The notes under the pieces were generated by a model that saw only the letters and a program-made list of their open reading frames with translations, was not told the origin of the DNA and ran no database searches. A stretch of 64,000 nt of DNA from Bugula neritina (Eukaryota > Animalia > Bryozoa), in NCBI GenBank assembly GCA_964035545.1, contig OZ037772.1, forward strand, positions 9,107,150 to 9,171,149, given 5' to 3'. The position numbers were made by a program, and so were the translations under genes. This document shows positions 7,829 to 63,993 of the stretch, in pieces. The number at the start of each line of letters is the position of its first letter. Position 1 is the stretch's first letter.

Positions 7829-7829
7829 A

Positions 7830-8217: not shown

Positions 8218-8240
8218 ATATTTTAGTTTACTTTATTAAG

Positions 8241-12012: not shown

Positions 12013-15000
12013 ATGTCTTCTCAATTTTTCTCAGTATTACGATGCAACAACAGTGTGACAAATATTACTCAATATGTCAGCAGGTAATAAAATATATCAC
12101 TGTGTCAATTTATCAATGTGTCAGACTATAATTGCGTCAGTCTATCAATGTGTCAGTCTATTAATGTGTCAGTCTACTAATGTGTCAGACTATCACTGTG
12201 TCAGACTATCACTGTGTCAGTCTATCAATGTGTTAGTATATCAATGTGTCAGACTATCAATGTGTCAGACTATCAATGTGTCAGTCTATCAATGTGCCAG
12301 TTTATCAGTGTGTCAGTCTATCAATGCGTCAGTCTATTAATGTGTCAGCATTTAATAAAGTTTTTTAAAGTTCTCGCAGATAGTTGAAATGTTCTAATAC
12401 GGTGACAATAATCAAAACTTTGTCAGAGAAATTATCCAGCTTACAAATAAGTACAAATAGAAATGCTCTCAATCGGTCAACCTAAAAGGAGCAACACTGC
12501 TAAATAAGTCAGCATACTGTCGGATGCGTATAATCAGTGTTAACATGTCTCCTGACTCTTAAAATTGTACTTTATCTAAAAAGTTGACGTGTCCATCTGA
12601 AGATACTGTAAATATGTTAAAAACTATTAACAAACCAAAACAGCAATTTATGAAAAAATTTAAAATGTTTTAATTTTTTGAACACTTTTTGGCAAAAATT
12701 ACACACATCTGATTAGTAAAAAATTAAAATGAGTCCCACGTACATGTAGGATCTATTTCCAAATGGTTCAAGTAAAGATAATGTTTATATTATTGCATAA
12801 TTTTTCTTGTTTCTGCCAGAATTGATCTATAATTAACTAATCTTTATACTTCTCAACTCAATTTATAGGTGGCAGCACCAAGGAAGAAGATTCATCTCTA
12901 AGTCTACTTTGAATAGAACTCCATTTCCTGCCAACATATCAGAGTTGGTATCAGTGACGGACTTTAAAACTCATCTCAACATAGCTAAGCGGAAAGAAGA
13001 TGCAACTTCAAGAGAGCATTTAAAATATTATATGCCCGAATTTAAGTGAGTTTTTGCAAGGTTTTTTTTATCAAAATCTAAAATTCACTGTTTCTAATAA
13101 CGTGTATAGCATCAGAAAAAGAATTGATATAGATCAGGAAATAAGTGGTTACTATGAATGTGCTGTCTATCATTGAGTAGGCCCTAAATGCCTACATCGT
13201 TGAATGTTATTTTTTCTCTACATGTGCTGAATATGCTATTCTTAATATGTATAAAAGTACATTATGAATCATAACCCATGAGCTTTTAGTTTGTTTTAGT
13301 ACAATAGACAATAAAAATTTTATATCTTTTTAAATTTTCAAAATTAGATGCAATTAAATATTTAGTTTTATCTGGCCACCTCTGGAATTATTTCAGTAGC
13401 CTAAACAAAGACCTTTGATTAAAAAAGAACTGTGGTTATACTTCATGCATGCTATAATATGATGTATCTAATATGTTGACATATGAATGATTATAATAAA
13501 ATTCAACATTTTATTTTTAGAGCGTCAGCAACTGTAACCATCAAACCAGATACAATAGGAGAAAATGATGAATGGGAGATCGGGTGGATTACAGGTTGCA
13601 AAAGCTTTGAACACAACTATTTATTTAACTCTTATGAAGCCTTTGGAAAATGGTACATACCAGCATTGCTTTTAGGTTTGTGTCTGCTTACACACCGCAT
13701 TTCTATCACTCATAAGATAAGAATCTAAGACAGATTGCATGGAGTCTAAGATAATTTTTTTTTTAATTTTTGCTTTGTGGTAATTATTAGTATTGAGCTA
13801 TAACTGTAATAGTTTCAGTTCAGTGGCTAAAACTATTAACAAAATTCAATATAAGTACTATAAGTTAATAACTCTCACTCAACTCACTCAAGCAAGTTTA
13901 TAGTAAGCTATCCCTGTGAGAAACTCCTGATGGAAAGGGTTCTTGATTGTACGGCTAAGGACTTGTTTAGATGAGGCACAGGAGCAATTATGACTGGGTG
14001 CTTTTCCTAACATCAACAATGGCCTTTACCGGGGTTTGAACCCATGACTTCATGTTCTCAAAGCAAACACTTTAACCCCTAAACCACGGCTGCTCTCTAT
14101 AAGTACTAGTTAATAGTTGGTAAAAAAATGAAACATTATATATATTAGTATTTACATCACCAGCAATACAGTAATGTAGTAATGTGACATTTTATTCTGT
14201 CCTCACTTGCAATTAGGACACCTGGTGGAGATTGCTTTTAGACAGATCTCTGCTTGGAACACAAAAGCCTACCTGACATTATCAGTAGTTAAGAGTTAAA
14301 TCTAGAACTTTGTACTTTAACATTACACCTGTCCCTAATACTAATATGGCGACATTTGCATATGCAACAGATTTGAGAAAATAACATTTGATAAATATAA
14401 ATTGAAAGCTTTTACCAATATCTAACCTATATAATTATATCTACAAATATTTAGAATAACAGATGGATTAGCATTTATTATGTATACATACAAAAATGAA
14501 GTCTATTACATTTAAGATACATTATATGAAGTTTAATTTTTATGTAGCAAGATGGATACAGTATTTAATATGAAATATCAGATATATTAGTTTCAAAACA
14601 TACATTCAATTTAATATTTTACATACTATGTCAATTTAATTTCATTTAGGAGGTCATTAAACATTGAACAAATCCCGTTTCAAGTATACCAGACCTTGAA
14701 AAATAATATATATTCTATACTATAATTTATATAACATAGTTTTCTATTCTATTTTTAGAAGAAACAGACATGATTCATGTGTTTCATGATGGGAAAGGGC
14801 CTTGGCATAAAGTTTCCAAGGACTCGGTAAGTTTTTCATCTCAGAATACTGAGAGATGTTCATTTTCAGCTTTCTCCAAACTAAGTAAAATAACTTACAA
14901 CCGTATTATAGTGATGGGTTTACTCAGTGGTCCCCGTGGTGTAATGGTCACCACACTTGCTTGCAAGCCAGAGGTCTCGGGTTCGATTCCCAGTGGAGGC

Positions 15001-18000
15001 AAAATTATTTTTCACTTATAAATGAGTTTTTTTACTAAGTAAGATAAAACTATGTACATTATTTGCAATTAAGCCTGCCAGAAAAAGCATTAATTATGAA
15101 CCAAAAGTGAGTACGTATCAACTTTGCAAGACTGAGATCCCTTTACTTTGCCATCTAAATATTGTACAATCAGAGATTCATGGCAATGAAAATGGGCTTT
15201 TTAATTAGACTCACGACTTCTTTTCTATTAGGCTACAAAGAAGCAAATATGGCTGAAGGAACTTTTATCATTATCACGGGCTTTTACTGAAATTAGAACC
15301 CCTGACCTTGTGCTTACCAAACCCAACTCACTTTCAAGTCAGAAGCCTGTTTAATCTAATACTAAACTAGTACTAATACTAACACTAAACTAGTACTAAT
15401 ACTAATACTAAACTAGTACTAATACTAATACTAAACTAGTACTAATACTAATACTAAACTAGTACTAATACTAATACCAAATTAGTACTAATACTAATAC
15501 TAAACTAGTACTAATACTAATACTAAACTAGTACTAATACTAATACTAAACTAGTACTAATACTAATACTAAATTAGTACTAATACTTATACTAAACATG
15601 ACAATTTTACAGTTAGTGAGGTTCAATTCTCAATCAAATAAGGAAAAGGAGATCAGTACGAACTTGAAGCTCTCCAGTCAAGCCATTATGCAATGCAAAT
15701 GGCACACCCCAGCAGACCCGAGATATGCCATTAGCCAACTCAACTTTGTCTCAGGATTAGAACAATTCTCAACTTGGCTGGTGCTCAAATCCTGCCCCTC
15801 AGGTAGAGTTGAGGGTGGCTTAGTGCATTAGTTTGGGTTCTCCAGTTTAGAGTTTGGAGCTTTATTTAAAGCCCTAATTCTAAATTTGAAAAATCAAACT
15901 ATTGCACTCAGTCACCTCCAACTCGGAGCTGCTTATAGACCAAAATACTGTACTTCAGCTTACAATCTGATTGCATTGATATCATAGCCACTTATTCTAG
16001 TGTTTATACTATTTAGTGTTTACCAAAGATAAGCATACAATGCACCCACTGAAAAAGTTTTTTAATGTGATATATTATAGGCATGTAAGCAGTACCTACC
16101 ATTGGTGCTACCAATAAAGCAGACAATCATAACTGTGTCTCTGCTGCAATAAAATGTTTAAAAGCAATGTTGGTAAAATTCACAATGCTTTTATATAGCT
16201 ATATATTTTGAAGAATAAAGCCACTTAGGTTTTTATAGAAATTTGGGTTTCCATTAATATTTTGCTTTTAAACAGGAATATATCTTTATTAGATAACATT
16301 GAAATAATGAAGTTTAATTTTTTAGTATTTTGGTTTGTATTTGAATAAATGTGCAACAGTTTATGTGAAAGCTGTTGTCTCTAGAATGTTCTAAAAACAA
16401 GTAAAATATTATTTTTGTATAGATGAAATATGATGTACACATTATACCATGTTTGTAGATGAAATACAAATAAAGAATAATAAGTTTGCAGAAGAATTCC
16501 ATGTGCTGAAAACTATTGAATGGTGTACATATTTTCAAGCTTATGTAGTTTGGAACAACCAATTAGGTACGAAAGAGATCAGCATTCTTCCAAAAAGTAA
16601 GTTTATTACGCAAAAAAAATTGAATTATCTTTTGCTATTAGTCAATCACATAAAACTCGAACCTGGAAATTTCCCTCCCCTTTTGCCTTACACTTCACTA
16701 TAAAAGCCGAAATAGCTTGTAATTATAAACTCTGCCTTTACCAAGATTTGAGCAGCAGACCTTCAGCTTGCAAGCAGAAATGTTATCCATAACACCACAG
16801 GGGCTGCCCTAGGTCAACTCAACATTACAAAACCCTTGCTTGTTAATGAATCTTGTGACTGATTGTCAGTTTTGAGAGTCATATACATAAAGCCAATTAT
16901 TACCAGTTCTCATGCACTATGATTAGCAAATCAGATATATTTGGTTAACTTGATCAATTTCAGTATATTATATGTCTGTTCTCGCTGAGTTGATAAACTT
17001 GAACGCTTTAGTCACAAAAAGATTCTGATTAAAGTAGAAGAATATGTTGCATTTAAGTTTATAAAATTGTTTTTTTTTAGCAATTCAGAATGAGTCTAGA
17101 CCCTTGAAACTTGCCAAACCTCTTCCAGAAAACATCCTAGCAGGACCAAATTTCAACGACAATGTAGCCTTTACGTTCCTTCGAGCTGTAAATGGTGGCC
17201 AAAGATTTTCGTCGGTAATTTTTTTTATTTCTTACACTTTGAAAATAAATGTTATTCTGCAGAGTCATACTGCAAGACAGGTTGAAAAGAAATATGCAAA
17301 ACTGTCTTTTGCAAATAATAAAATAAATGAGGGGCTAAATTTGTCTGGCTATAACATGCCAGTGTAGGATGAAGTGTTCCATTGACTGACCGTGACGTAT
17401 ACGTTTCTCGCAAGAAATAACATAATTATAAGAATTTTGTGAATATTTTTGATTATCCATAACTATATTTCTCACCTATCTCCGCTTTGTCTTGTTCGGT
17501 AGATTTTCTGCATAATTATAAAAGACAAAGTAAATTTTACGTACATATTTTATACTCAAATATCTATAAGCTCAAGTGTTTCATTAGTCTCATCTCTTTA
17601 AAAAAAACCTTTGATGTGTTCAGCCAAAGTAAATATTTGATTAAAATTTTAAGATAAAATATCAACGTTATTTTCTCTTGTGAGTAAGGAAAACATAATA
17701 ATCCTAATTGCTCAGAGGTCAAAGGTGAATTGTAGGCTAATATGAGCGTGTTACATAAAAAGTTGATTCTTTTTAGCAAAATTTATTTACCAAAGCTTTC
17801 TCACCAGTTACCATTAATAACCTTGTTTATTTTAATAACAGAAACTCTTACAATTTTTGAAATACTTTTAGAACAATATTTTTGTATTTTAATGATATTC
17901 ATCAAAAATTATTTTTTCTATGCAGTATAAATATATGAACAAAGAAGCTTTGTATGGCAGGTATTTTATTATTCAATTTAATTTATATGTTATACGTACA

Positions 18001-18934: not shown

Positions 18935-21900
18935 ATGCTCATTAATAAACTGAGAACTATTGCTTCAGCTCTTAAAAGATGCCAGCAACTAAAGAAATGG
19001 TCTTGTTCTAATATACCACACAACTTCCACACTTCTAGGTATGTGTGCATCTTACACTTTTACTGGTTTCAAGATTCCAGTTTCAAACTTTTAAACTGAA
19101 TGTTGTTCTCTAGCTGCAATCAGTTGAGAAAAAGCATTAATATTGTGAAATTTGGTTTATACAACAATAGGATTAAAAGAACATTAGGTAAACTGTGAAC
19201 AATTTTTTAATGATACATGAGTTTTGTTATATAATGATTCTAATTTTGTGAAATATAAAACTTTTGCCACCACCATATGGGATTCAAACCTGAGACTTCC
19301 AGCTCGCAAGCAAGCGTTAACCATTACACTGTAGAAACTATACTGCGACCACATCAAATTTAAAACTGTTTAAGTTGCAACCCATTTTTTTTAAAAATTG
19401 TTCCTGCAAGTTATACATTAAGGTGAGCTTGAAAAGTGCTCTTTTGTTAATGTTACATGTGCTCCCATTTAGGTGCAGTAAAGGATAAATTGAGATAGCT
19501 TAAGTCTTTTAGATTTCTTTATAAATTTTTGTTTGGGGCTCCGGTTGAAGTGTTTGTGAGAACACAACTTTTTTTTGCTACATTTCTAATCTAGAACACA
19601 GGCTTTTCTCAATTTCCTCATTACTGCACCTATAACTGTACCTCTGCTTGTGAACACTCATGGTTAGTTGTTTACAAACTAAAGGTTCTTTTCAACATCT
19701 CATTGGAGACTGGCTGGTCTACCGGACAACATAGAGAGTGTGGTTGATGTGTTACATCTGGAATATTCTATAAAAAAGCCTAAACATCCTGTAGAGATCT
19801 ATGCAAGTTCAATTGGCCCAAAATTCAACATGTATAATCTTTTGTGAGTTTTTCTCCCATTTTCCAGTCATACTGCAAGTTGTAAAAATTTCAGTATCAA
19901 CTGTAAACTATGAGTAGTTGTGAACAAAATATAGCTCAAGTAACTCTTAAGTAGCTCTTAAACAATGTTACTTAAGTAGTTCTTAAACTATGTTACTCAA
20001 GTAACTCTTAAGTGTTAATAGAAAATCAAAAGTAGTTATATTACCTAACTATAACTTAAATGTATTATAGTTCTTGACAAAAAAATTAAGTATCTAATAA
20101 GTTTAAGCTAATTACAACTTAAGTGGGTCTTAGTCAAATAAAATTAAAGTATAGCTATATTAACCTACTATAATTCAAGTAGCTCTGAGGTCTTGACCAA
20201 CTCTACATTAAGTGGCTCTTGGCTAATAATACTTTAAGTAACTTTTATAACTCAACTATAACTTGGGTAACTTCTTCAACCAACTGCAAATTAGAGTAAA
20301 TTTTGACCAACTATATAACTATACATTTTATGTGAACAGTGTTAAGGCATTAGTACACATACGTAAAGAGTGTGATGATGACGAGTGGACCATTGGCTGG
20401 ATTCAGGGTATAAACACAAACTTAGCATCTCATTATGGTGACTATGGATGTGTAAGGGTTGTCAACCCTACCCTTGCACCAGGTAAGCATTAAATAAACT
20501 CACACAAGTCGAAATCTCTGTGCAAAACCCCTGATGTAAAGGGAGTTTTAAGCAGGCTAAGAACTTATTCATATGTGGCACAGGAGCAATTATGATTAGA
20601 TGCTCTTCCTAACATCACCAATGGTCTTTACTGGGGTTCAAACCCATGACTCCGAGTTTACCGAGCAAGCACTCTAACCCCTAGACCACAGCTGCTCCCT
20701 ATTCACTATAAGCTCTACTAAGCTAAAACTGTAACCCCTAGAGAAAGTGAAAGCAGTTTATGATGTAGATGCAAGAGTAGCAAAAAACTGCTGATTTTTG
20801 ACAGTTTTTATTTCAGCCTTAAACCAAATTTATTAGGTGAATTAACTGTTTTGGCAAGTAAAGCTTTGTTCTACTGCATGCACGTAAATAAAAAAAATAA
20901 AAATTAAAAAAATTAAATAGTTATTATCTTGCTGCAATATATGTGAAAAATTATTATTAGAAAAATACTGTTTTAATTTCTAATCCCCCAAAAATTAGAA
21001 TTCTATAAGTTTACAAATTAGTGTGTAAATTAGAATTTATTAGAGTCAGCTAGAAATCACTTCGTATGCTTTTGAAATCACTTTAAGGATTAATATGTCG
21101 CAATATATCTTGTTTGGCTTCAGATCCAAAAGACAAGAAATATCTGACTAAAGATGGCCACCAGACAACAGACCAGTATCTGCAAAGTTTAGAACGTAAG
21201 GCTAAGCTTTCTATACTGTAAAAGTTGTAATAAATTTAGTCTCCACGGTCAGTTATACACTACCTCAATTTCCATTATCATATTATGGGAATGGATTTTT
21301 TCATTTGGCTAATGGAAGTAGTTTTATCAAATGAAACTGCAACTATAAGTTAATGCAAACTGCAAACCGCAAATAATGCATAAAGAAAAGCAGTGATATA
21401 GTATGTTTCAGGAGTAAAAGTCTATAAACTAATATATAAATAACTCTCAGTTCATAACTTTATGGCAGTTCAGAGCTACCTTGTATCATGCAAATGTTGT
21501 AATTATCTTGACTTAATAAAGTAGATCAGCAATTTTAAGTGTTACAGCTTTTCAATTTTCTATTCAGCACTTAATTGTTCAAATTTGTAAACGGTTTGTT
21601 TAGCAATAATTAAAACAATGCAGTAGGTACTCGATAAATAAATTTTGTTTTCTTTACATGGTTTTCCTCAAAAACACATTTTATAAAATATTTGCTAAAT
21701 GGATTAAAAATGATCAATTTTTGAACATAGCTTAATGAAATATGTCTTTTTTCTTGAAAACATGGTACTGCTAACTATATAGAAAACACATAATATATAT
21801 ATTCACTGTTCTTATTTATAGATGGTTACGAGTGGTCAAATGATTCAGATGGAAGTTCTGAACTTCCCTGGATGTATTTCTATACTGTAAGTTTATTTCC

Positions 21901-24900
21901 TGATGTAGTGATGAGATCACCCATCAGTCTCCGTAGTGTAATTGGTTAGCACACTTGCTTGTCAGCCAGAGGTCTTGGGTTCGAATCCTAGTAGAGGCAA
22001 AGTTTTTTTATATAAGCTATTTCGGCCTTTAGTGAAATGTAGTAGTACTTCGAGGGAGTTGAGTAGACAGGAGAGCCTGAAGACTAAAGGAGTAGTAGCC
22101 AGGCCAGTGGAGTTGAGAGAACTGGGTGGGTTGTAGTAATGAATTTACCCAGTTTACTATAATGCTCTTTACTAAAGGCCAAAATAGCTTATAAAAAACT
22201 TTGCCCCCTTCTGAGACTTGAGACCTGAGACCTCTGACTTGCAAGCACGTGTGCATGGGTGAACTCATCACTACACATGCAATATTTTATATTCTAAGGG
22301 CACTTGCATCACTTGTTCATTCTGTCAGCTATACCAAAGTATGTGCTATAACATGTTTTGGTTGACACTATTAGTTTGGTAGATTATAGCCAATTATATC
22401 TCAATTCTTCTACTTTGAGGGCATAATCTGACCCTTGGTGCATATGGTTATATATTATATATGACATAAAGCAATTGCCTATATACTATGCTGTTAGCAA
22501 TATATAATTTTATTAATTTCAAATTTAATTTAAATGGTATCCTTTTCCATAAATTCACATTATGCAAATGAATGCCTGTACGGATTGTTTGTGGTTTGCA
22601 TTCACTTATATTTGCAGTTTCATTCAATATGTAACTATTTTCATTAGTTGGGTGGAAAAGTTCATCCACGATAATAGAAACACAAGTGATTATGCAAATC
22701 ATGGATAAAAAACTCATGCAAGCTTATAGTCGCTATCCCTGTGAGAAACCTCTAATGCATGGAAGGTGTTTCGTTAAAGTGGGCTAAGGACTTATTCGAA
22801 TATGGCACAGGAGCAATTATGACTGCATGGATGCTCTTCCTAACATCACCAATGGCCTTTGTCTGGGCTTGAACCCATGACTTTGCGCTTCCTATGAGGC
22901 GAACGCTCTAACCCTTAGACCACGGCTGCTCCCTTGCAAATCATGAATGCCTGTACAGAATTATTTGTTGCTTGGGTTTGCATAATGTTATGGTTGTAGT
23001 TTCATTAGATCAAATTAATTCAATTAAGTCCTGAGTGAAAAATTAGTTTGCATAATGTGAATCATGGAAATGTAATAAATAAAATGTAATAAATAAAAGA
23101 CCTGTAATTTGAGAGTTGTGTTGAGAGCGTTTTTGTAAATTATTTTACTTTAGAATGCAAAAATATTAGATAGCTTTCAAATGCATTAATTTTGAATTAT
23201 GGTTGCAAATAAAATTATCAGAAATTTTTTACTCTCCTATGCATAATATTATATGAACTATATATAACTTTCTATAAAATATTATAAGTAAAACATACAG
23301 AATATTTTCTGTGATCTATAATGCTCTACACCAATCTTATACCATGGTATAAAGCATTTATTAGCTTTGCGTTTAAACCTCTTAAGTCTTTACCTCTAAG
23401 TTCAAAAGAGTTTTGTAATCAACACAAAAAATTTAACTCAGGCATTAAAACATTAAAAAATTTGAATTCTTTTCATTAAAAACTCTATCATGCAATCTTT
23501 TTTTAAATAATTTGCTGAAACAGAAATATTTCTTTTTACAAACTCGAGTTGGAAATATTATTATTTTTTTTAAAAAAAGAATTACAAAAAATTTACAAAA
23601 AAAATTTACATTATATTTTAATTACCAAAATTGCTACCTTACCGTATATACCTGTAGTTTGGGTGTTTCAGATAATTCAATTCTCCCATCACTGAGCTCA
23701 AAAATAAATTTTCTGCTTTAGAGAGAGCCTAACGTAACTGACACTAAAATGATTCCGTGGGTGTGTCAATTATTTTCAACTGACAAGCCTTTCATGCTGC
23801 CTTCATGGGAGCATCCTTTTAGCAAAGAAAAACAACCGACTCTCACTAAAGTCACAAGAAAAGACCAATTCCTTTTGTGGCTGGCTATCAAATCTAAAAA
23901 ATCCAGTAAGTTGAAAAGCTTAAAAATGGAAGATATAAATATTAGCACTTTTTCTTTTATTTCAACACTGAAAAAACCTTGTTATACTAGGTTACATTTA
24001 AAATTTTCAACTACCTAAAACAAAAATTTGTTGCCTCATAAAACAATTGTGAACTGGGAACTTTATTTAGTACAGATCAGCAAGTTGTGATCAAACGTTA
24101 AAGTTTGCTCAAAATTAATTGGAGTTTACTATATTTGGTATGTTAATGTGCTGATTATATAGTAAAATCTATACAATACAGTAATGGTATTGATATTGGG
24201 TAATCTATACACTAAAGTAATGGTATTGATATTTGGTTAATCTATACAATACAATAATGATATTGATATTGGGTAATCTATATACTACAGTAATGGTATT
24301 GATATTAGGTAATCACATAGTAATATGGTACTGGTATTGTAGAAGAAGTAAGGGTATTAAGAACTCTCAGATGGAATACAAGTCTACATGCTGACTTTGA
24401 CGTAACAAAGCCTCCTTTTGACGGAGGCATCACAATCACCTTCCCAGGTAATTGGCAGCAAATCTGATTATAATCGGCAGCTGGTTTGATTATATTACTT
24501 TGTTAGCCTAGGGCCACACTGTGCGTGTTTTCGCATGCAAAAATTGAAACCACAAGTAGCAAAGGTGTCCACTGTAGCGTCAGTGATGCGTGATGAATAA
24601 AGCTTTCATTTTTAAATCGCACTTGCTTTCAATAAAACGCAATTCACTGGAATGTAGCACTAAAATAAAGAAATTGGGCTTGCTGAATAACTACCAGCCA
24701 ATTAGGTGACGACGACAGAGACAATTCGCACTTGCGTTGAGAATGCTGAGCGACAAGTGCGAATGTTTTCTCAACGCGTACAGTGGACACCTTTGCTACT
24801 TGTGTTTTCAATTTTCGCATGCGAAAATACGCACCATGTGGCCCTAGGCTTAGTGTTTACGCAGAGATACCAAATTTTATGTATCAAATTGAGGTTTTTG

Positions 24901-25580
24901 AAAAGTTGAGTCCAAAATTTGAGTATTGAAACTAAAGAAATCTTCTATAAGACAAAAAAATTGCTTTGTCGATTAAAATTATATGTTAATTATTGAAAAT
25001 ATACGATTAACAGATTAACACATACATGTAGCTGAAACTTTGTTGATCAATTTATTATAAAAATAAGTTTCTGATCAATTTATTTTAAAAAATCCGATTT
25101 GATTCTTTAAAAATTATTGCTCTATTTGAGTATAGTTTTTTAATATAAATTGTTGAAGGCGCTCTTTTAAAGAGTGCATTTATATTCTAGGCAATAAATG
25201 TAAATGTGAAAAACATACCGGTAATATGATTTTTAGAAAGACTAAAGTCATAGTTGTTAATATATAACATAAAGGAATAAAATAAATTTTTTGTTAGTAA
25301 AAAAACAATAACAAATGTTGATGGAGCTATTTGTGCTAATAAAAACTTTTTTATTTCATAATTACAGTAGGGCTAAAATTCTCTAAAGACACTACTGATG
25401 TAACAGAATGATTTAATATATGAATATTTTTGTCTCTGTAACAGATGAGGATAACTATATCAAACTGTTGGACAAGAATATAGATATTCCTCCGAATGTA
25501 TTGAAATTTCCTAGAGCTAACAAGGCCTTTACACACCTCTGGCACCCAAAAGATTCCCCAGATAACCCAGTAGTAAGTGG

Positions 25581-25628
<48 letters not shown>

Positions 25629-26806
25629 GATTTTTATTGGTGAATGATTCAAATTTAATAGATTTTTATTAGTGCTGAAATGAAAATGGGCATTTGTTTA
25701 GGGTTAGCTCTTTTGCAAAGAAGGAAAGATTTTACTTTCAGGAAGTGTATGATTATGAGGGTGGCCTGTTACCAGACAATGGTCAATCAGCTTCGGAACC
25801 ATCGGGTAGAAGCAGCAGTTCACCTTCTAAAGTGAATTTATCAGACTCAAACAGTTCTGACGTCATGTCTGCTCCAATAAAGAGAAAGAGATCAATTTCA
25901 ACATCTCCTAAAGAGTCAAGTTTCGAAGGTGTGTTGTGAATTTATGCTTTCACTAATTATGGGTATTTATAAAAGCTAAATCAACACTGCCGACTCGGAG
26001 TAAAGGCCTGGCCTCACAATCGTGAAAACCACACAAAATCGTGTGACCATTTTCGTGAGTTATCCTCTCATTATGACCAGCCACACACATAATAAATAGT
26101 CCGTGAATGAGTTTTGCACAAGATACGAGAAACAGAAAATTGCCAAATAGAGAAACATGGTGGAAATGAAATTATTACCATTGCTTAAATTCTCTTGACC
26201 AATCAAATAGTGCTTATTGTCGATTGTGATTTTTCATTTATCGTCATCATTGTGTACACCCAACAATGACAATTTTATTTGAATTCTCTCAAATTTTCTT
26301 GTACAAATATTTTTTCAAGTCAAATAGACGATTTCGATTTCGTGTGATTCTCACGATCGTAAGGCCAAGCCTTAAGAATATAGTTTATTTAGGCGAATGA
26401 TACAAGAATAACTATCAAGATACACAAGTAGGCCTATTACATAATTTCACAAGAGTATAAACACAACATAACTAGTCCACTGCTATCAAACAACTGTGCG
26501 CTATACGAGAGCGCGTTGTCAATCACCTTATCCAATTAGCCTCATCCCTATCGTGGACTATACATCCCATTGTTCCGAGTGCCAGTATATATGCTGCATA
26601 TAGACCTCCTCTGGTGCACGGTAGATAATAGAGCAATCAGACAAGGAGTTGCCTGTTCGATATAATTATATAAATTCCTTACAGGTGTAGCCAGCTCTTA
26701 TTCAGGAAAGAAAAGGAGAGGTGGCTCATTCAATAAACCAGCTGCGTCAAGCAGCGGTCTCGCAAAAGATGCTGCTAAGAAGCCTGAGAAAGATTCTGAT
26801 TCCTAA
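18935..26806 (+). CDS. FAM78: FAM78-like paralogue B (exons 18935-19038, 19685-19843, 20340-20482, 21822-21886, 23722-23905, 24343-24447, 25445-25572, 25742-25928, 26685-26806)
   Basis: WTIGWIQG, SNDSDGSSELPW, LTKVTRKDQFLLWLAIK, VLRTLRW, IPPNVLKFPRAN; Ser/Lys-rich tail; splice phases consistent. Confidence 0.85.
19258..19345 (-). repeat. tRNA-like repeat family 2 copy, diverged
   Basis: GGATTCAAACC...CTCGCAAGCAAGCGTTAACCATTACAC. Confidence 0.6.
20505..20699 (-). mobile_element. SINE family 1 copy
   Basis: Same consensus as 13890-14096. Confidence 0.85.
21904..22275. repeat. Family 2 composite: one full unit plus an inverted partial unit (hairpin)
   Basis: Left arm ~21904-22045 is reverse-complementary to ~22165-22275. 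Confidence 0.75.
22715..22933 (-). mobile_element. SINE family 1 copy
   Basis: Same consensus. Confidence 0.85.
24165..24340. repeat. ~36-bp tandem repeat (AATCTATACAATACAGTAATGGTATTGATATTGGGT)
   Basis: 4-5 degenerate copies running into the exon-6 acceptor of B. Confidence 0.8.
24506..24849. mobile_element. PIF/Harbinger-type MITE
   Basis: ~70-bp TIRs starting GCCTAGGGCCACA / TGTGGCCCTAGGC; TTA TSD at 24503-24505 and 24850-24852. Confidence 0.85.
25582..25624. repeat. (TA)n microsatellite
   Basis: Direct observation. Confidence 0.95.
25932..26683 (-). mobile_element. Putative solo LTR (~380 bp once the nested MITE is removed) forming intron 8 of paralogue B
   Basis: TGTTGTGAATTTAT...ATAAATTCCTTACA termini (TG..CA, imperfect inverted ends). 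GGTG TSD at 25928-25931 and 26684-26687. Minus-strand AATAAA at 26384-26389 and a TATA-like motif at ~26586. Confidence 0.7.
26004..26372. mobile_element. PIF/Harbinger-type MITE nested in the solo LTR
   Basis: TIRs AGGCCTGGCCTCACAATCGTGA / TCACGATCGTAAGGCCAAGCCT; TAA TSD at 26001-26003 and 26373-26375. Confidence 0.8.
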
Positions 26807-28146
26807 CAGTGAAAGGATGAAAAATCAAAAAATCCTTTCACTTGCTGTGTCTATACGAGCTTAATTAGTGCACAAATTGTTGCTGAAGTTCCAATTGCAG
26901 TTATTAATAACTGCTTTTGTTAAAATTTGTATTTAGACAGAATAAAAGCTCCTTCTATATATAATAGTTATTTAAATCTCAAAATCTTACATAGGTACCT
27001 AAAAATGTTTAAATAATTATGAAAACTTTTGAATAGAACAATAATTAATGACAAAAATCAATTTCTAAGACTTTGAGTGCTAAAATAGATTTATGTTTAA
27101 TATTGTAACGTTTTACAATCAATTTAAATCAAGTCATCCAAACTCCTACAGATACTGGGATAATCAAATATTAAAACTGTTTGCTCGGTGAAGCTGTAAA
27201 AACATCATTTTACATTACACTACGTAAAGCAATTCTTGGAAAAAAAAACTTTAGTGAAATTTCTTTGTTCTTTAAAACTCTGACTAAATTATTTTTCAAT
27301 TGTAGATATTTTTTATTACCAGCAAGATACTTTGTATACAGTTGATTTAGGTTGCTAGCGCATGTTTAATGCTAATATAATTTTAACAAGTATTTTCCAC
27401 TATAGTCTCAAATTATATTTATAGCAAATTTTGAAGATATAGTTAAAAGTTTATTTCCTAGCTATATATACTAAAATAAGTTGTTTATTTTGTAAAAAAA
27501 TAATTGATCTAGTTCAAGTTATTTATAAGCCATAGAATCATCTGAATCTTTTTTATCCTTTGCGTCAGTTGCAGATGTGTCAGTTGCAGATGTGTCAGTT
27601 GCAGATGTGTCAGTTGCAGATGTGTCAGTTGCAGATGTGTCAGTTGTCAGTTGCAGATGTGTCAGTTGCAGATGTGTCAGTCGCAGATGTGTCAGTTGCA
27701 GATGTGTCAGTTGTCAGTTGCAGATGTGTCAGTTGCAGATGTGTCAGTTGCAGATGTGTCAGTTGCAGATGTGTCAGTTGCAGATGTGTCAGTTGTCAGT
27801 TGCAGATGTGTCAGTTGCAGATGTGTCAGTTGCAGATGTGTCAGTTGCAGATGTGTCAGTTGCAGATGTGTCAGTTGTAGATGTGTCAGTTGCAGATGTG
27901 TCAGTTGTCAGTTGCAGATGTGTCAGTTGCAGATGTGTCAGTTGCAGATGCGTCAGTTGTCAGTTGCAGATGTGTCAGTTGCAGATGTGTCAGTTGCAGA
28001 TGTGTCAGTTGCAGATGTGTCAGTTGTAGATGTGTCAGTTGCAGATGTGTCAGTTGTCAGTTGCAGATGTGTCAGTTGCAGATGTGTCAGTTGCAGATGT
28101 GTCAGTTGCAGATGTGTCAGTTGCAGATGTGTCAGTTGCAGATGCG

Positions 28147-35093
<6,947 letters not shown>

Positions 35094-37862: not shown

Positions 37863-43231
<5,369 letters not shown>

Positions 43232-50082: not shown

Positions 50083-50324
50083 TGTGGAAATACTATCTGT
50101 CACGTATTTACTTAGTTGAACTAATTCTTTTGGCATTAGCTAAAAAGAGTATTTCTAAGAGAACTTCAAAACTAATATGCCTGGTATACAACAATGCTCT
50201 TGAATTTAAATTCCGGAATCAATCAATTATCACATTTTTATAGTAACAGAAAATGTTTACCTCTCTAACTGTTATAACATACTAAAATGATTGTATTTAC
50301 TTTAAAAAAAATATAAACGCTAAT

Positions 50325-51444: not shown

Positions 51445-54400
51445 TCAGTTTTTTCTTCTGTTCACCAAATCAAGTCTAACTTTAAGCTGGTTGTATAGCA
51501 AGTTTTCTGCTTTTGTAAATTCAAGCAAAAAATGTTTATGAAAATTTTGGAATTGATGAAATCAGCTGCAATGCAAAATAAACCAAGATATACTAAGTAA
51601 CAACTTAAATGATAAGATATTATTATATATAAACTTTAACATCAGTTAAAAAACTTAAATGAAAAATGTAACTATTGTGTTTTCTAAATTTTTTAAACTA
51701 ACATGTCTGAAAAATTGCAAGCATATCTAAATGGAAATGTTGCTAAAATTGTTGATCTAGTTACCATTTTATTGCAAACTTATATATTTAGTCATGCATG
51801 GTTGGTATCATTTTTCTGAAAAAAATTACTGCAAGATAAAGAGTAACATTCTTGCTTCTATTTATAATATCCTCAATCTAATATCTGACATACTATATAC
51901 TAACCAAAGGCTTAGCCTGGGTTCCCTCACTCTCCCAGTACAAGGATAGGCTGTTTAAACAGTTAGCTTTGCTTTTCTTAGCAAACTCTCTGTCATTTGA
52001 CTCCATGATTGTGTTAACGTAATCTAAACCAGTAATTTTATTATGATTATGTAGCATTTCCCAAACTGCCACATGTATATTATTGTAAAAATTTTTACTG
52101 TTCACTGAAACCAATTACTTTTTGAATATATAGCATATTATTATAGTATACCATTTATAACTTATAATATATACATACAAGCATGATCTAAAATGCTATT
52201 AAAAGTAATTAATCTGCAAAAAGAACACTCTGGTTTAGCACTTAAATCACCGTATAATGCATAAGTACTTCTTGTGTTGTTTAGAATAAATTTATTTTTA
52301 GTGTATATACTAATATTTCAGTCGGGTTTTAGGTTTTTTCATTATAATGTATAGACTTCTAGTTAGCCTCAAGTTTGCAAAAAACTTTAGAGAAAGTTGC
52401 GGGCATTTTATTTATTTTTTGCCCAAATTTGAAAGAAAAATTATAGCAGCAATTACCTGAAGGCTTGTCTATGGAACAGCGATGTTTAAGAGGCTTGCTA
52501 CAGTCCACCTTCGTGTCAAGAAACACCTCATGTGTAAGAGCTCTTAGAGGGTAAATCTCTCCTTAAATTAAAAGTGGCATATAAACATCATTAAATATAT
52601 TAGTTACATATTATTCTCACAGTACAGTTTTAAATTATTTATTATATAAGTAAAATATTTGCAAGTTTAGAAGAGATTTTGCTGTAACAGATATTTAACT
52701 TTTAAATGACAATTATTTTAACATGTAAAAGATTAATAAGTTTCTTTGCTCTATAAGAAATTAAGTTTTTCTATAATCGCTTGAAAAATAAAAAATATAT
52801 GAATAATAATTTTTACTTTTTTATATGCAAAGTAAAAAGCTTGTGGTATTGCTTTCCTTGTCTATTAAGTAAAAAGTTAAGAATGTATACTATCCATAAA
52901 TAATATAACAGAAGACTACCATACCTGTAAGGCAGCAGCGTACTACTAAGTGAAACAGGTATATCTGGTGAGTTCGGACTCTACTCAAACACTCCCGTCT
53001 ATTTTTATCTGCAAGTGGTGGATTCCATGTAGAACTTAGGTCTATGTTTCTTACACAGTCTAATTGTAAATATGTCAAACTTGTGGAGATAGAAGGATTC
53101 CCTGTTATATGTTGCACCTTTGAGACAATATTGAAATGATTGAATATAATTATATGTAATGTACAGTGTTTTTAGTAGAACAAAGGCTAAGATTTATCAC
53201 CTGGTGCACTTTTCTCTATATATAATAATATAACAATATATAATAATATAACAATATATAATAATATAATATAATATATAAGATAATAATATTATATAGT
53301 AACATGATCTTGATATGACAACAAATAAAATGCTTGTGTTAACATGAAGTACTGTGATGCGTTTTGATGATTCAAATATTTAACTGTAAAAGATTAATAA
53401 GTGAACATTTCAACGGTTTTAATATATATACATCATGCAACAATAATTACTAAAGATTTTCTTAAAGCAACTATGAAAGGTTACTAAGTATTGTGCTCAT
53501 TATGAGAAAATTAGCAATAATTTACACTTTTTATAAATTTAGCTGTTATATAATGTAGCATATTAACCGATATAATATATTATAAGATATGTATATTATA
53601 TATTATATATATAACATATAATATATATATATATCTTATAATATATTATATATATAATATATATAATATATATATATAATATATGTATATATTATAAGAT
53701 CATTGTAATTAATACCATTTCAACAATCAGTGTATTTTTTTTTAAATTTCTGTTCAATATTCAAACGAATTTATACTAACTTCATTTTCATCTTGAGCGA
53801 GCCATGGGAAAGATGAGTCACTATTAACTTCATCTTCTGCTTTTAAAACTATGAAAAATTGTACTTTGTCAGTGTATTATAGTTGCATATGTAGTTTAAG
53901 TTAGATCATGTGTATGCTTTCTAGAAGTTTCTGCTGCTTGGTAGTTACAACGCTGCCATAGTATATGAACCAAGTCATTGGTTTAAACTTTTTTAGTTTC
54001 GAAGGAACATCAAACTATATAAGAATCTCTGCAACACCTGTTAGAATCCTTCAAACCATGCAAGTTGCCAGCATGGTAAAAGGTGCATACCTGCTATCAA
54101 ACCTTTCTCAGGATCCTCCTACATTAATAAAGTCTTTGAATATTCAACAATACCAACCTTCAGGCTTGGAGGGACAACTCCAATAGCTCTTTCCTACTCC
54201 TTTGTAGTAATTTTTGTGTAGATACGATTTGACTCTTTGCATCCAACCAATTTGCCAGTTTGCTGTTTCTGGTACTGTGGATACAGTAATGCAAGCTTCC
54301 ATTCTGTAGTCATGACAAAAATTGTTTTGCTTATGAAAATTTAATTATTTCATTAGCATAGTATAAATGTTGCATAATATAATAAATATTTTTGCATTAT

Positions 54401-55726
54401 ATTGTCAATTTAATAATAAAAATTGTGAGCATCCGTGATATAGTATAGTTATAGAGTGCTGTATATATTAAGGTTCACTTTGATTCCAGTAAAAGCAATT
54501 AGCAATGCTATTATAGGAAGGGTATTCAGTCTTCTATAGCAATACGAAATAAGTCTTTAGTCTGTTTAAAATAAACTTTTCATATATACTATATTGTTTT
54601 TTATTTTACAAACCTAATTTGTGAAATATTAAGTTGTAAAAGATTTTCTCCACCATTATTCTCAACAGGTACAGATGTGGTGTCATTTAAAACTTTTGTT
54701 TTGACTTCTTGAATTTCTACTAAACTTGGTATAACTTTAGCAAGTGACACGTTTTCTTTTGGTGATGTTACAATGCATCTATTCAGCCTAAATAAATAAT
54801 TATTTTATGTATATAAACATATTTTCATAATAATGAAATAATAAAAAAGTTTGCAATGTTTATTAGCTAAAAATATCTTTTTAAAATAAAGTAATAAATA
54901 AAGTTATTTATTCTAGATTTGCTACTTAATCAAAAGCTACTCATACAATTATATTTAGTTATATTCAATTCATTTTTTTTAATAAAACGAAATATTTTAA
55001 TCCAATCTCATTTAGGCCTATATGAATAAAAGTTATAATGCGCTAAAATTTTCAAAAAGAGTTATATGATATTTCTCAGTGGACATTTAATTGTTGTAAA
55101 CTTTTAAGCTAAAATCTAGACAAGTATTTTCTTGGGTTTGAAAATTTTTTTCAGCATTTGTTTACCTTTGAGAATAGCAAATTTTGCAATATTTTTCTCT
55201 AACACCAGCATTGCTTTTTCATGCTCAAAACCAGCAAATTGTTTTCAAATCAAATTATCGCTTTATAAATTACATAATATAATTTATATGCTTCTTTTGG
55301 TACAGCTCCCTAATTATTTTTGTGTTGTTATAAGGCTCTATGGTAATTGAAAATACTTTTTACATCTATAGAAATCTATAGAGATTCTAGCTAAATAAAA
55401 CTAATTATTTAATTTATAATTATTTTTGAATGTTGAACTAGTAATAAAAACCACATACTATTATGTATATAAACTTTTTTTTAGTAACATACAAAGCTAG
55501 TTTTAGTTAGGCAAATATAGGATATATTAATATTATATATTACGAACATGAATTTTTATAAAATAGGTAGTTAAAATAGAACATTCTTATGAGTCATGTT
55601 ACAACACTACTTCTCCTCTATCCTACAAGTCATTTAAATTTGAAAACGCTCTTACATGCAATTTGATTTTGGATTTCGACTTAATACTCCCAATTGACGC
55701 AGCAAAACTCTATTTATTGCCCTCAT
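51445..55726 (-). CDS. FAM78: FAM78-like paralogue F, divergent (exons 55726-55656, 54787-54614, 54303-54158, 53848-53781, 53117-52925, 52561-52457, 52023-51905, 51486-51445)
   Basis: WQIGWMQ, SYWSCP, SDSSFPWL, IYPLRAL, VDCSKPLKHR; same intron phases as the other copies. The last exon is the least certain. Confidence 0.75.
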
Positions 55727-56031
55727 GGCTAAATTAATTCTCATACATGAAAAGAATGTGAACTCAGTTAATGCATATATAGCAAAAATGCTACTAAGGT
55801 CAACAATAGTAAAGTTGTACAATGGCAAAAAGAATTTCAAGCTTGTGAAAACAATTTAAAATTAATTATAATATAAGTCTTTTTTGGAGAAAAGAGAAAA
55901 ACATTGTGGTATAATTTAAAAAAAACCACAGAAATAAAGTGTGATCTGGAATTACACCAAAAGCAAAAATTCTTACTCTTAATGGAGTATTAATGCACTT
56001 AAATAGAAGCCAGTAGCTTTTAAAGTCGAAA
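55727..56031. promoter_or_regulatory. Putative bidirectional promoter between F and G
   Basis: Divergent predicted start codons only 305 bp apart. Confidence 0.55.
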
Positions 56032-60562
<4,531 letters not shown>

Positions 60563-61417
60563 CAAAACAAGAAAAAAAAATTGAAGCCAGAGTTATTAGC
60601 TAAAACGTAAAATTACTGTAAAAAAATTATAAAGTTCAATAATATTAATATTAACAACTTTTAATGAATATTTGTACAAGGTAGAAGATCTTTTGAGATA
60701 AATAAATATTGTGAAATATTTCTGGATAACAAAAAACCCGTAATTTAAAATCATAGATACGTATAACTTTAATTAATTTTATTTTTGCACTACTAAGTAA
60801 ATGAGCAAATAAATGTTTTATAATATGTGCATTATATCTGTTCTATTAAAATTAAACAAGAAAGAAACGCTTTTGTATTACTAAGTAATTTGTTTACTAA
60901 AAAAAACAAATAAATTGTGCTTATATCTTAGATACAGCGTACCAGCATGCAGTTTGGCTTAATGTAGTTGTATTACCCAGTGCTTAAGTGCTTCCACGTA
61001 ATATATACTGAGCAATATATTATTAATAAATTGAGGGTTTTTGATTTAATAAACACATTAAATAGCAACTTGTAAGTTTCACGAATATACAATTAATGCA
61101 ATTGCAATGTCGTATTCATTGCATGGTTTGTAAAAATAATCAAATATTTTTTTTAAGTATTAAAACATTTTCACTTTATTTATTTTAACTTGCAGATAAT
61201 GCAATAAATGAGAACAGCAAAAAATAAAATAAATATTATTTAAAAATTCAAATGAACTCTAGAAATGTCAACATAGTATACTTGAAGCAATACAAGCCAT
61301 ACAAAAAGATTTACACACATTTTTTTGTTTTTTGAATATTTAAAGTTTTCTTGCATCACTTCTCATAGTTATAAAGCCCAGCTTCCTAAGTTATGTAATT
61401 TAATAAACCACCATACC

Positions 61418-63993
61418 TCACTGGTTCAGGTATTTTGGTCCCATTATTACCTAAACAACATTATTACATAAACTATATTATCGTCCCCAACATGCATCTA
61501 TGCACATAGTATATTATTTATAATATAAGAAATATTGCAAAACAGTTTTACAAAACTACTTATTTATTTAAAATTACTTGCATATCTAAAACCAAATGTA
61601 AATAAACTACACCAGTACTAAGAAATTAAAAACTTGCAAATTCTATAAGAACTCACTTTTCATCTCCAATTTATTAGCATATGATTATTTATATAGTTCT
61701 AATATCTACTGATAATTGCTTTAAAAAGAAATGAAATATATGACCTATATATATGTATAAACAAAATATATATTGGATATTAGATATTTGAGTGTTTTAT
61801 AGGGAATGAGTCACACAGCGATGACACACTAGTTTGTAAAGGTGAGTTCACTTGAGTAAAATTTAGCAAAAATTCCGTAACTTATCTCAATCAAAGGAAT
61901 AAACTTTACTCTCTAACATTATACATCACTATAATATAATTATATAAATACTATAATACAATTACTATATATAGCAGGTATTAGTATTTGTATTGCAGTA
62001 TTTAGTAACACATACATATAGTGTAGTAAAAGCAATTACAGTTTTTGATATCATAATACTATGTTGCAGCATCTAAAATAGCATGATCAGCAGTCAACTA
62101 TACAACATGTAATAAAATTTACGATATCATTTAGTAATAATGATATTCCCTCTCATCTACTATATAGCATCGTATAGCACGTACTATCTATAATGCAACA
62201 TGTGATAACACATGCTTTAGCGTATATAATAGCACAAATAATAGTAGCATGGCACTTACATATTAGTATAATATATTAACATATAGGTGTAATAGCTAGC
62301 ATTTATGGTAGCATTTACATTGTCACATGTTAGCACAAATAATAGCATGTATAGTTATAACATTCACATTATTATATACATATATCATAGCAAAGACCTT
62401 AGCATATATAGTAGCATTCTATGCATCCTACATTCTATACATTAATAGCAGACTAAAGCATTAATATAATATCCTTACCAGCTCAGGCTTGTTACGATCA
62501 GAATACTGCCACAAAAAGGAAACAGCTTCATTGGCTGACGGTGGACCCAGCACATTGGCCGGGATCTCTTTATGGTTGTTGACATATATCACAGGCTCCT
62601 CTTGTATACCTGCATGACAGAAAAAAGAAGACAACTACCAACACGACCACAGAGAAACATATATAATATTATATTATATTTATTTTAATATATAATATCT
62701 TATTATGATATACTATAAAACTTACCATTGTTTAATAAAAATGTTGTTCTCTGCCTGATAGGTTGTGTAGAATCATATTTTACTAAAAGTTTAACGTTCC
62801 ATTCAGCAGAGCGTAAAATTTCATAATCTTCTACAAGAAACATGAAACAATTAAGATAAAACAGAAATATCTATTACATGTTAGATGGTTGTGAGGATGA
62901 TAAATACGAAAATATATAATTTAATATGTGCAAACATGTTAAATTATAGCAAACAACTGACAACAATTGAATTAGTTAAATTTGATAGCCTATAATAAGA
63001 GAAAAGTTTATGAAACATTGGATTTGGGGTTTGGTTTCAATACTATCAGTGAGATTTCAAACTATCTGTAAAGACGTTTATGAAGTTACTTAGAGTAGAA
63101 CAACCATCTACAGTTTTATCTATTTTATAAACACAAACTGCATGTATATATAGAGCTTTATTTTTATCTATAATGTATTCATTTTAAACTAATGCATTTA
63201 GATGAGTTAAACTATATTATTTAAGTAATTATATGTTCGTGCATGTATGGTCTAAATTAATTTATAAAGTAACTCATTTAGTCAACTGCTATTAAAGTAA
63301 AATAATAAAGTAAAATAATTTAGTTTATGATTTAAATGTTTCATAAATAAATTTATGAATCTAAATTTCTATTCATATTTAGTTTATGATTTAAATGTTT
63401 CATAAATAAATTTATGAATCTAAATTTCTATTCATATACAAATTAGAAAAGTGTCTGACTACTTTCATTGTACCTTTATGCTTTATGCAGTTCAATTTAT
63501 GATACCAATATTTCTATCGACTAAAATTAACAAGTTATTGAAGTGCCAACTGTTAAAAAAGCTATTTTTGTTTTAATGAGGCACAGCCAGTGCTAACTAA
63601 AAGGCCTCTGGCACTTGGCTGTGCTGTAGAAAGCTTTTCGTAGTACGTTTTATTATAGCTAAAGTAGCTTAGCAAAGTAGCGCTATAATTTCACTACAAC
63701 TTTAGTGGTCAAAGTAAGAAGTTACCTGAGTTTGAAGACTTGAGTGCCAGCCAGGTTATGAACTCATAGTCTACGTTGATCAGTGACATCGGCTCTTCGG
63801 CAACTTTCTCTGGCAGGCAGCGACAGTTTTCTCCAAAAATTCTGTGTAAATTCAGTCTCTCACACAGCCGCTGCCAAAATGTCGCTTTTGATAACAAAAG
63901 ATTGTAGCAGTTTGTAGGAAAAATAGCATCTGGCTCGTCAATCATTTCCAGATAAAGAAGTCGTTCTGGTGACGGCCCTTCTATATTCAAAAC
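61418..63993 (-). CDS. FAM78: FAM78-like paralogue H, last four exons (63993-63726, 62830-62726, 62609-62479, 61450-61418); 5' part outside the window
   Basis: FITWLALK, ILRSAEW, IPANVLGPPSANEA, VIMGPK. Closest to G. Confidence 0.83.
63318..63437. repeat. ~59-bp perfect tandem duplication
   Basis: TTTAGTTTATGATTTAAATGTTTCATAAATAAATTTATGAATCTAAATTTCTATTCATA occurs twice. Confidence 0.9.

Follow-up and report, generated by a model that had tools for sequence, protein, structure and literature searches.

In the stretch of Bugula neritina DNA analysed here (64,000 nucleotides, the window), we found seven complete genes (A to G) and the 3' half of an eighth (H) which, on profile matches and exon structure, are FAM78 paralogues. 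The sequence comparisons support the view that the array to which they belong is a lineage-specific expansion derived from the adjoining canonical FAM78 gene, and its copies have intact frames under purifying selection. We propose that the copies were relocalised, with an acylation-type start exchanged for a mitochondrial presequence; this is the most likely mechanism, and we give it about an even chance of being correct.

The array genes carry the FAM78 domain

FAM78 proteins, conserved among animals, are about 250 residues long. External searches were run exon by exon, while the spliced models were used for frame checks, identities, pN/pS and the tree. A profile of exon 3 matched 115 cluster representatives with E-values down to 2.5e-13, including proteins named in their sources as FAM78A (Bugula neritina and Lingula) and FAM78B (Watersipora and sturgeon); with hhalign, exon 3 scored 99.1% and exon 5 96.7% when compared with 40 aligned FAM78 proteins. 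The family assignment made in the earlier note is borne out by these matches, and the profile comparison with FAM78 that it had suggested thus returned significant similarity. Exon-wise HMMs built from outside homologues matched exons 3, 5, 6 and 7 in collinear order, and exon 2 of gene D matched the canonical exon-3 profile (E=1e-4). Pfam and NCBIfam, searched with single exons and full-length homologues, returned no family and only sub-threshold noise.

At 18 alignment columns, at least 11 of the 13 sequences have the same residue, and these columns match the invariant positions of FAM78. This core comprises the W, G, W and Q of the W-x-I-G-W-I-Q block, together with Y, G, P, D, F-x-x-W-L and W, and single substitutions in it occur in A, G, I, K and the copy on another chromosome described below. 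The predicted fold of the domain is an all-beta, Ig-like sandwich, whose best PDB match (VIA-align, Z 7.4) is to generic Ig-like domains; the fold search offers no functional lead. Apart from such generic matches, it showed a weak NDT80-like resemblance (TM 0.35), which was set aside.

Eleven divergent copies lie in one array

Beyond the window the array continues to 11 divergent copies (A to K) in tandem and inverted arrangement, which occupy about 80 kb of one chromosome, or about 100 kb with the canonical FAM78 orthologue at the far end (G000:C8:9208673-9221843). The "at least eight" genes counted previously were therefore a correct lower bound. One further FAM78-like copy is located on another chromosome (the C9 copy), bringing the total to 12.

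Gene A, on the plus strand, has exons 1 to 7 at 12013-12083, 12869-13045, 13521-13675, 14759-14826, 15613-15802, 16492-16596 and 17081-17214, with an open frame and GT-AG junctions throughout. Gene B follows on the same strand (18935-19038, 19685-19843, 20340-20482, 21822-21886, 23722-23905, 24343-24447 and 25445-25572), its first exon being the top-scoring ATG-to-donor candidate 5' of exon 2. Its closest paralogue, with 41% identity, is gene C, which spans 29613..35093 on the minus strand (exons 1 to 7 at 35093-34999, 34560-34405, 33867-33725, 32943-32879, 32242-32056, 30915-30820 and 29737-29613). Also on the minus strand are gene D, spanning 38704..43231 (43231-43167, 42809-42654, 42275-42130, 40818-40757, 40165-39991, 39480-39376 and 38831-38704), gene E (50082-49958, 48574-48419, 47656-47511, 46906-46836, 45944-45758, 45577-45476 and 44966-44839) and gene F (55726-55656, 54787-54614, 54303-54158, 53848-53781, 53117-52925, 52561-52457 and 52023-51905, the last of these exons being weakly supported). 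Gene G stands head-to-head with F, with 305 bp between their ATGs, and its exons 1 to 8 run on the plus strand at 56032-56147, 56438-56587, 56881-57026, 57453-57514, 58692-58959, 59560-59664, 59963-60096 and 60521-60562, where the stop codon lies. Gene H, on the minus strand, has exons 7, 6 and 5 in the window (62609-62479, 62830-62726 and 63993-63726) and exons 4 to 1 past its end (64792-64731, 65079-64934, 65842-65702 and 66601-66450 in continued numbering). An insertion of 25-31 aa is present in exon 5 of G, H, I and the C9 copy; that of G, about 30 aa long, is common to H.

Several structural claims of the earlier note could be compared with these models. Its seven start codons fall exactly at the modelled positions (12013, 18935 and 56032 on the plus strand; 35093, 43231, 50082 and 55726 on the minus strand), gene H enters the window with an acceptor at 63993 as described, and the matching exon boundaries of the eight paralogues proved identical in intron position and phase to those of the canonical FAM78 gene. 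The eight-exon skeleton with phases 2,2,1,0,1,1,0, which it had given to all seven complete genes, stands in part: the phases 2,2,1,0,1,1 hold in the models of exons 1 to 7 for A-G, and for H-K, but within the window, exon 8 and the seventh intron (phase 0) could be placed with confidence in G alone, and outside it in J. In seven of the seven genes A-G, the exon encoding W-x-I-G-W-I-Q is flanked by a phase-2 AG acceptor and a phase-1 GT donor. Across the 12 copies 84 exons were expected; every one that was placed is open with intact GT-AG splice sites, exons 6 and 7 of J being those not placed.

The copies resemble the neighbouring canonical gene in exon structure

Exon by exon, the canonical orthologue is 82-100% identical to B. 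neritina FAM78A. The array copies share 23-36% identity with the canonical protein and 16-41% with one another. Canonical gene and copies have the same intron phases, with acceptors and donors at the same profile offsets. All seven exons that encode the domain in the canonical gene are kept in the copies, and its two 5' coding exons are replaced in them by one short first exon spliced to the same phase-2 acceptor. The lineage-specific expansion proposed previously is supported, and the copies derive from the gene next to them. We also considered whether the C9 copy might be the ancestral gene and rejected this, because its identity to the canonical protein is 34% and it clusters with K. In the B. 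neritina draft assembly, the contig with FAM78A stops 3.8 kb beyond the gene, short of the array.

Purifying selection acts on the copies

Between sibling species, exons 2-4 of the array have a pS of 0.257 and a pN of 0.045 (pN/pS 0.18), against a pS of 0.229 and a pN of 0.005 (pN/pS 0.02) for the canonical gene. Exons 3 and 4 of gene E, compared with sibling contig L008, gave pN/pS values of 0.16 and 0.33, and gene F was compared with sibling contig L009. In one DNA run (X1), two haplotypes of the region are present, the second of which keeps the first exon of gene F open at about 8% difference.

The sibling-species comparison of first exons covers gene A (contig L012). Its exons 1, 2 and 3 are 87, 89 and 92% identical and gap-free, while introns 1 and 2 are 71-72% identical and the 5' flank and intron 3 about 80%. 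The ATG, frame and donor of its first exon are conserved and no acidic residue has been gained; its pN/pS is about 1, a value that gives no sign of coding constraint on this exon.

First exons encode basic leaders that are nearly free of acidic residues

The first exons are models from genomic DNA: the run search for RNA evidence returned the DNA run X1 and no RNA run with the locus, and the reads of X1 gave no sign of splicing. In 11 of the 12 copies, the reading frame of exon 2 closes within 1-15 codons 5' of the acceptor with no ATG between, so that a start exon further upstream must be spliced in. Upstream of exon 2, each gene offers 8-63 ATG-to-GT candidates. An unbiased best-donor rule gave the first exon in B, C, D, G, H, J and the C9 copy; the one chosen in A, E, F, I and K was tied or second by donor score, and in these genes the true first exon is a putative choice among candidates. 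In gene E, an alternative start at an in-frame ATG farther upstream (50136) would bring in two acidic residues. The leaders of MDH2 and SOD2, considered as positive-control presequences from the B. neritina genome, are also encoded in separate first exons.

The modelled first exons encode 21-50 residues, which are basic, Ser/Thr-rich and nearly without Asp/Glu. Taken together, their peptides contain 4 D/E and 48 K/R in 360 residues (1.1% acidic, 13.3% basic), compared with 7.8% acidic and 4.6% basic residues in 122 pseudo-first-exons from local non-coding DNA, and with about 12% and 10.5% in the mature parts of the copies. Within the best-donor set, a net charge of at least +3 with at most one acidic residue was found in 5/7 peptides (null rate 8.2%, P=7e-5). 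The first acidic residue has a median position of 44.5 in the copies and of 11 in 57 FAM78 homologues (p=2e-7). The peptides of A (1 K/R) and, outside the window, of K (2) and J (3) are weakly basic. The maximum 18-residue amphipathic moment was barely higher than in comparators (median 0.40 versus 0.37, p=0.04), and a secretory hydrophobic core of 7-15 residues was absent (maximum 9-residue Kyte-Doolittle mean 0.46-1.86).

These data agree with the earlier description of the leaders as acid-poor, basic and dissimilar in sequence: no pair of leader exons showed significant homology after correction. They also fit its suggestion that an acylation-type N-terminus had been replaced, as an M-G start is absent from all 12 modelled N-termini. 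This start, of myristoylation type and common though not universal in the family, is found in 18 of the 57 homologues and begins many FAM78 proteins of other phyla. Leaders of this kind might have been usual in FAM78 elsewhere, which the earlier note had recognised as evidence against its reading; we looked for them, and FAM78 of other phyla is without such leaders. Its other argument, that an R-x-F-x-(T/S)-S motif marks a presequence, held only as to the presence of the motif. An R-x-hydrophobic-S/T-S/T stretch opens exon 2 in all 12 copies, but exon 2 itself encodes it, and the canonical gene has the homologous R-S-G-L-T-P-S-T at that position. It is thus inherited from the canonical linker rather than convergent, and provides no independent evidence for targeting.

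A model for relocalisation by first-exon replacement

The composition of the leaders fits a presequence, from which we infer mitochondrial import and cleavage of the copies. Our model suggests that the M-G-x3-S/T acylation-type start of ancestral FAM78 would imply a membrane anchor, and that, after duplication, first-exon replacement would have swapped this start for the leader. The leader would then act as a mitochondrial presequence, probably cleaved near the R-x-hydrophobic site, and the diversified FAM78 domain would be delivered into mitochondria. More tentatively, and at somewhat under even chances, we hypothesize that Bugula possesses its own family of roughly a dozen mitochondrion-targeted, fast-diversifying FAM78-domain proteins, which would have arisen from a membrane-anchored cytosolic ancestor via a single exon swap. 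The heteromeric complex and the sperm structure envisaged in the earlier note are speculative.

There is a small but appreciable chance that several first exons are mis-modelled, and that their shared presequence look comes partly from the choice of candidate. The many candidates per gene, the tied or second-ranked choices in A, E, F, I and K, the run search that returned DNA only, and two metagenome scans for orthologous first-exon regions (the gene E first-exon ORF and the gene G exon-2 region), which gave no match, are consistent with such errors. However, the best-donor picks show the pattern by themselves, the spliced start exon is required in all but one of the copies, the first exon of gene A is open across species, and that of gene F is open in the divergent haplotype. 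A further possibility, which we consider very improbable, is that the copies are decaying or unexpressed duplicates whose leaders are secretion signals or meaningless. In its favour are their extreme divergence and the result that, in a collection of 15 billion proteins, no array copy occurs among annotated or transcript-derived proteins, their traces being genomic ORF fragments from Bugula metagenomes only. Against decay stand the open exons and intact splice sites (with exons 6 and 7 of J not found), the pN/pS between sibling species and the 18 family-defining residues retained, while the secretion variant is opposed by the lack of a hydrophobic core of signal-peptide strength.

It is also conceivable, though unlikely, that the leaders are real N-termini but not import signals, and that they are basic, partly amphipathic replacements of the acyl anchor (e.g., binding acidic membranes directly) or act in another compartment. 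Canonical FAM78 is predicted from its M-G starts to be lipid-anchored, which makes a substitute membrane-binding N-terminus plausible; moreover, the amphipathic moment is not clearly presequence-like, and the R-x-hydrophobic motif pre-exists in the linker of a canonical protein that is presumably non-mitochondrial. On the other hand, an acid-free, Ser/Thr-rich extreme N-terminus, here of 35-57 residues, is the classic signature of a mitochondrial presequence in an animal protein, and this acid-free stretch is kept in 12 copies despite sequences that cannot be aligned.

Significance of the array

Among the top-ranked papers that mention FAM78, which list it in expression or association screens, we found no functional study. 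The array offers a natural experiment, in which the domain was multiplied twelvefold, its lipid-anchor start was lost and an import-like leader was attached. It points to the residues that are indispensable, as the 18 columns survive at 16-41% identity, and indicates that the N-terminus, and not the domain, may set the site at which the protein acts. If relocalisation is true, the array would be a clear example of relocalisation through replacement of the first exon, with expansion afterwards. It would also have enlarged the mitochondrial proteome in the Bugula lineage, and the diversification of the copies would suggest an interaction-driven role, for instance with germline or larval mitochondria or with bacterial symbionts. 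If the leaders are not import signals, the finding would be an ordinary fast-evolving tandem gene family.

Comparison with known systems

The array proteins share a homologous domain of about 250 residues with FAM78A and FAM78B of vertebrates and the single-copy FAM78 of invertebrates (e.g., Lingula, Owenia, Watersipora and Bugula FAM78A). They have in common with these the blocks W-x-[IV]-G-W-I-Q, S-D-S-D-G...P-W, F-x-T-W-L and P-x-A-N...W and the predicted all-beta sandwich, and the intron positions and phases are those of the canonical Bugula gene. In contrast to the one or two copies found elsewhere, 12 are present here. The copies also differ from canonical FAM78 in a pN about ninefold higher, in the exon-5 insertion of G, H, I and the C9 copy, and in a short, basic, acid-free leader in place of an M-G acylation-type or long Cys-rich N-terminus.

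Presequences processed by MPP and Icp55 have R-2 or R-3 motifs. The leaders resemble them in length (20-60 residues), net positive charge, near absence of Asp/Glu, Ser/Thr enrichment, and an Arg placed two or three positions ahead of a bulky hydrophobic residue, with Ser/Thr after it. Unlike in these presequences, the Arg motif stems from the canonical linker, helical amphipathicity is not clearly raised, and the leaders are rich in Lys/Asn and not in Arg/Ala, in keeping with a genome of 30% GC. Relocalisation of a protein within the cell after duplication, by gain of an N-terminal targeting exon, is a known evolutionary mode. As in that mode, the domain was kept and the N-terminal exon alone changed, spliced to an acceptor that was already present and has the same phase; what sets the array apart from the usual case is that the putatively relocalised lineage then expanded to about a dozen strongly diverged copies.

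Array extent and gene models

In a six-frame self-comparison, the window resolved into eight gene-sized blocks in which families of short and diverged coding segments recur in the same order. Exons were found with exon-wise HMMs, built from the FAM78 proteins of other animals and iterated on the locus, after which phase-matched splice sites were enumerated. Across the whole genome (216.0 Mb, 321 sequences; for the published assembly, PMC11480708 gives 216.00 Mb, with 320 scaffolds and the mitochondrion), the exon-3 profile matched 13 places, 12 on C8 (9,120,671-9,211,928), the sequence that contains the window at 9107150-9171149, and one on C9. Seven complete genes (A-G) lie in the window. The 5' part of H, as well as I, J and K, were modelled from the 50 kb past the window end, together with a dispersed array-type copy on C9 (G000:C9:6449393-6453834, minus strand; seven open exons). 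The twelfth C8 match closes the array at its far end and represents the canonical FAM78 orthologue (C8:9208673-9221843, minus strand).

The earlier note had described paralogues with matching exon boundaries and an eight-exon skeleton. The boundaries agree: splice acceptors and donors of the array copies have profile offsets identical to those of the canonical gene, and all models have open frames and GT-AG introns. The skeleton stands for exons 2-7, recovered in every copy except for exons 6-7 of J; exon 8 is short, poorly conserved and convincing only for G, in the window, and J. It is tentative for B (window 26625-26690, within the 3' region 25573-26700), E and K. The best conserved exon encodes W-x-I-G-W-I-Q, with a phase-2 AG acceptor, a phase-1 GT donor and 143-155 nt in A-G (7/7). 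Exon 5 carries an insertion of 25-31 residues in G (58692-58959), H (63726-63993), I and the C9 copy compared with the other copies and the canonical gene.

The proposed family membership was confirmed by profile. External searches were run one exon at a time, with joined models serving to check frames and to compute identities, pN/pS and the tree. Of 1.84 billion cluster representatives, 115 matched the exon-3 profile; the source names looked up among them were FAM78A (Bugula neritina, Lingula), FAM78B-like (Watersipora), FAM78B (sturgeons) and FAM78A/B (cuttlefish). In profile-profile comparison with 40 FAM78 proteins, exons 3 and 5 reached 99.1% and 96.7%, respectively; no Pfam or NCBIfam model covers the FAM78 exons or the full-length homologues. 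We regard the array and its family assignment as virtually certain. The AlphaFold model of the Watersipora FAM78 domain is all-beta and confident (pLDDT 92); PDB fold searches returned generic Ig-like sandwiches only (Z ≤7.4) and no functional lead, while the ESM Atlas matches were FAM78 clusters followed by a weak NDT80-like match.

From 8.3 kb onward the window has a GC content of ~30%. Upstream, a Ty3/Gypsy-type LTR retrotransposon (230-8240, minus strand; protease, RT/RNase H and integrase domains) has 57% GC against about 30% in the surrounding DNA; direct repeats bound it at about 230-880 and 7790-8240. A 297-aa ORF at 8931-9824 (plus strand) lacks a Pfam match; its DNA is 90% identical to a sibling-species contig (L012:7-1790), compared with about 78% in the flanks. 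The ORF probably represents a conserved single-exon gene of unassigned family. Many array introns contain a SINE- or MITE-like interspersed repeat of about 170-200 bp, also found in the sibling species (13900-14080, 20470-20680, 33367-33525, 34153-34470, 45050-45180, 46014-46200, 47812-47938, 48616-48816, 58004-58177 and 60136-60320). Tandem repeats occupy intron 1 of A (12059-12384) and G (56100-56590), the latter creating a long spurious ORF that reads into exon 2, and a satellite-like block separates B and C (27500-28560).

Origin and evolution of the array

The canonical gene comprises nine coding exons; its identity to FAM78A in the older B. neritina draft is 82-100%, depending on the exon. 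Its last seven exons pair one-to-one with array exons 2-8, and the intron preceding the first shared exon is in phase 2, as in the array. Thus, the array copies have one 5' coding exon in place of two in the parent. Canonical exon 2 (G000:C8:9218429-9218521, minus strand) runs on in frame beyond its donor to an M-G-A-S-G-S-S start. This suggests an alternative isoform of canonical FAM78 with a myristoylation-type start, such as the one annotated in Watersipora. An M-G start, typically M-G-x3-S/T, is found in 18 of 57 FAM78 homologues from other phyla.

Array copies are 16-41% identical to one another (median 23%) and 23-36% identical to the canonical protein, and 18 family-defining columns are retained in at least 11 of the 13 sequences. 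In a maximum-likelihood tree, 11/12 copies cluster on long branches, with B+C, K+C9 and G+H+I as supported groups. B. neritina is a cryptic species complex. Two Bugula-associated JGI metagenomes supplied contigs of a sibling species that overlap A, E, F, I and K in part and have 77-80% identity across mostly intronic DNA. Over array exons 2-4 this comparison gave no indels, pS 0.257 and pN 0.045 (ratio 0.18); the canonical gene, compared with the older draft, gave pS 0.229 and pN 0.005 (ratio 0.02). By these values, the array is under purifying selection, its proteins evolving about nine times faster than the canonical one. The protein collections searched contain no annotated or transcript-derived array protein. 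It is unlikely that the copies are dead or secreted; the leaders lack a signal-peptide-like hydrophobic core.

First exons and their leaders

In 11/12 copies a stop codon interrupts the exon-2 frame 1-15 codons before the acceptor, with no ATG between, and Met is absent or late in exon 2 itself; translation must therefore begin in an upstream exon that is spliced in. The seven start codons reported in the earlier note all lie where it placed them. Ranking by donor all right-phase ATG-to-GT stretches within 2.5-3 kb upstream, we found that the best candidate was the previously proposed exon 1 in B, C, D and G and our own choice in H, J and the C9 copy; for A, E, F, I and K we chose an exon that was tied or ranked second. 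Against the sibling species, the first exon of A shows 87% identity, no indels and a conserved ATG and donor (introns 1-2, 71-72%; 5' flank and intron 3, about 80%), but 7/9 of its changes are non-synonymous. That of F also remains open in a second haplotype, which differs by about 8% and carries R-to-K and V-to-T changes. In X1, a DNA run and the only sequencing run found, window 54100-56099 shows two haplotypes at equal depth, 5-8% apart; one contig has 24 differences over 294 bp of F exon 1 and the F-G intergenic region. Mis-modelling of first exons is a rival explanation for the leaders; we consider it likely that most of these models are right.

Composition was as the earlier note described. 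The modelled exon-1 peptides contain 4 Asp/Glu and 48 Arg/Lys among 360 residues. Acidic residues make up 7.8% and basic residues 4.6% of 122 pseudo-first-exons taken from the same non-coding DNA, and about 12% and 10.5% of the mature parts. With best-donor exons only, 5/7 have a net charge of at least +3 with at most one acidic residue (null rate 8.2%, P=7e-5), and the best-donor exon of the C9 copy is basic and acid-free. Compared with the 57 homologues, none of which has an array-like leader, the first acidic residue comes later (median position 44.5 versus 11, p=2e-7), the first 30 residues are more positive (+4 versus +1, p=4e-5) and the amphipathic moment differs marginally (p=0.04). Even between the closest paralogues the leaders gave no significant alignment, consistent with constraint on composition, not sequence.

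Our best reading is that duplication was followed by relocalisation: a single duplicate of the canonical gene would have acquired a new first exon, spliced into the old phase-2 acceptor, would have lost the acylation-type start, and would then have expanded into the array. Whether the leaders direct mitochondrial import we put at an even chance; a rival is that they form a basic, membrane-binding N-terminus.

The R-x-(F/I/L)-x-(T/S)-S motif, previously placed at the exon 1/2 junction as the end of most leaders and a presequence hallmark, is present in all 12 copies, but its coding sequence opens exon 2 and does not lie at the end of exon 1, its Arg often in a split codon. Because it aligns with R-S-G-L-T-P-S-T beginning the homologous canonical exon, the motif is inherited, so it cannot count as independent evidence for a presequence. 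The residue after its Arg is a bulkier hydrophobic one in the array copies than in the canonical gene. R-2/R-3 (MPP plus Icp55) is a cleavage pattern of mitochondrial presequences, and the array motif fits it.
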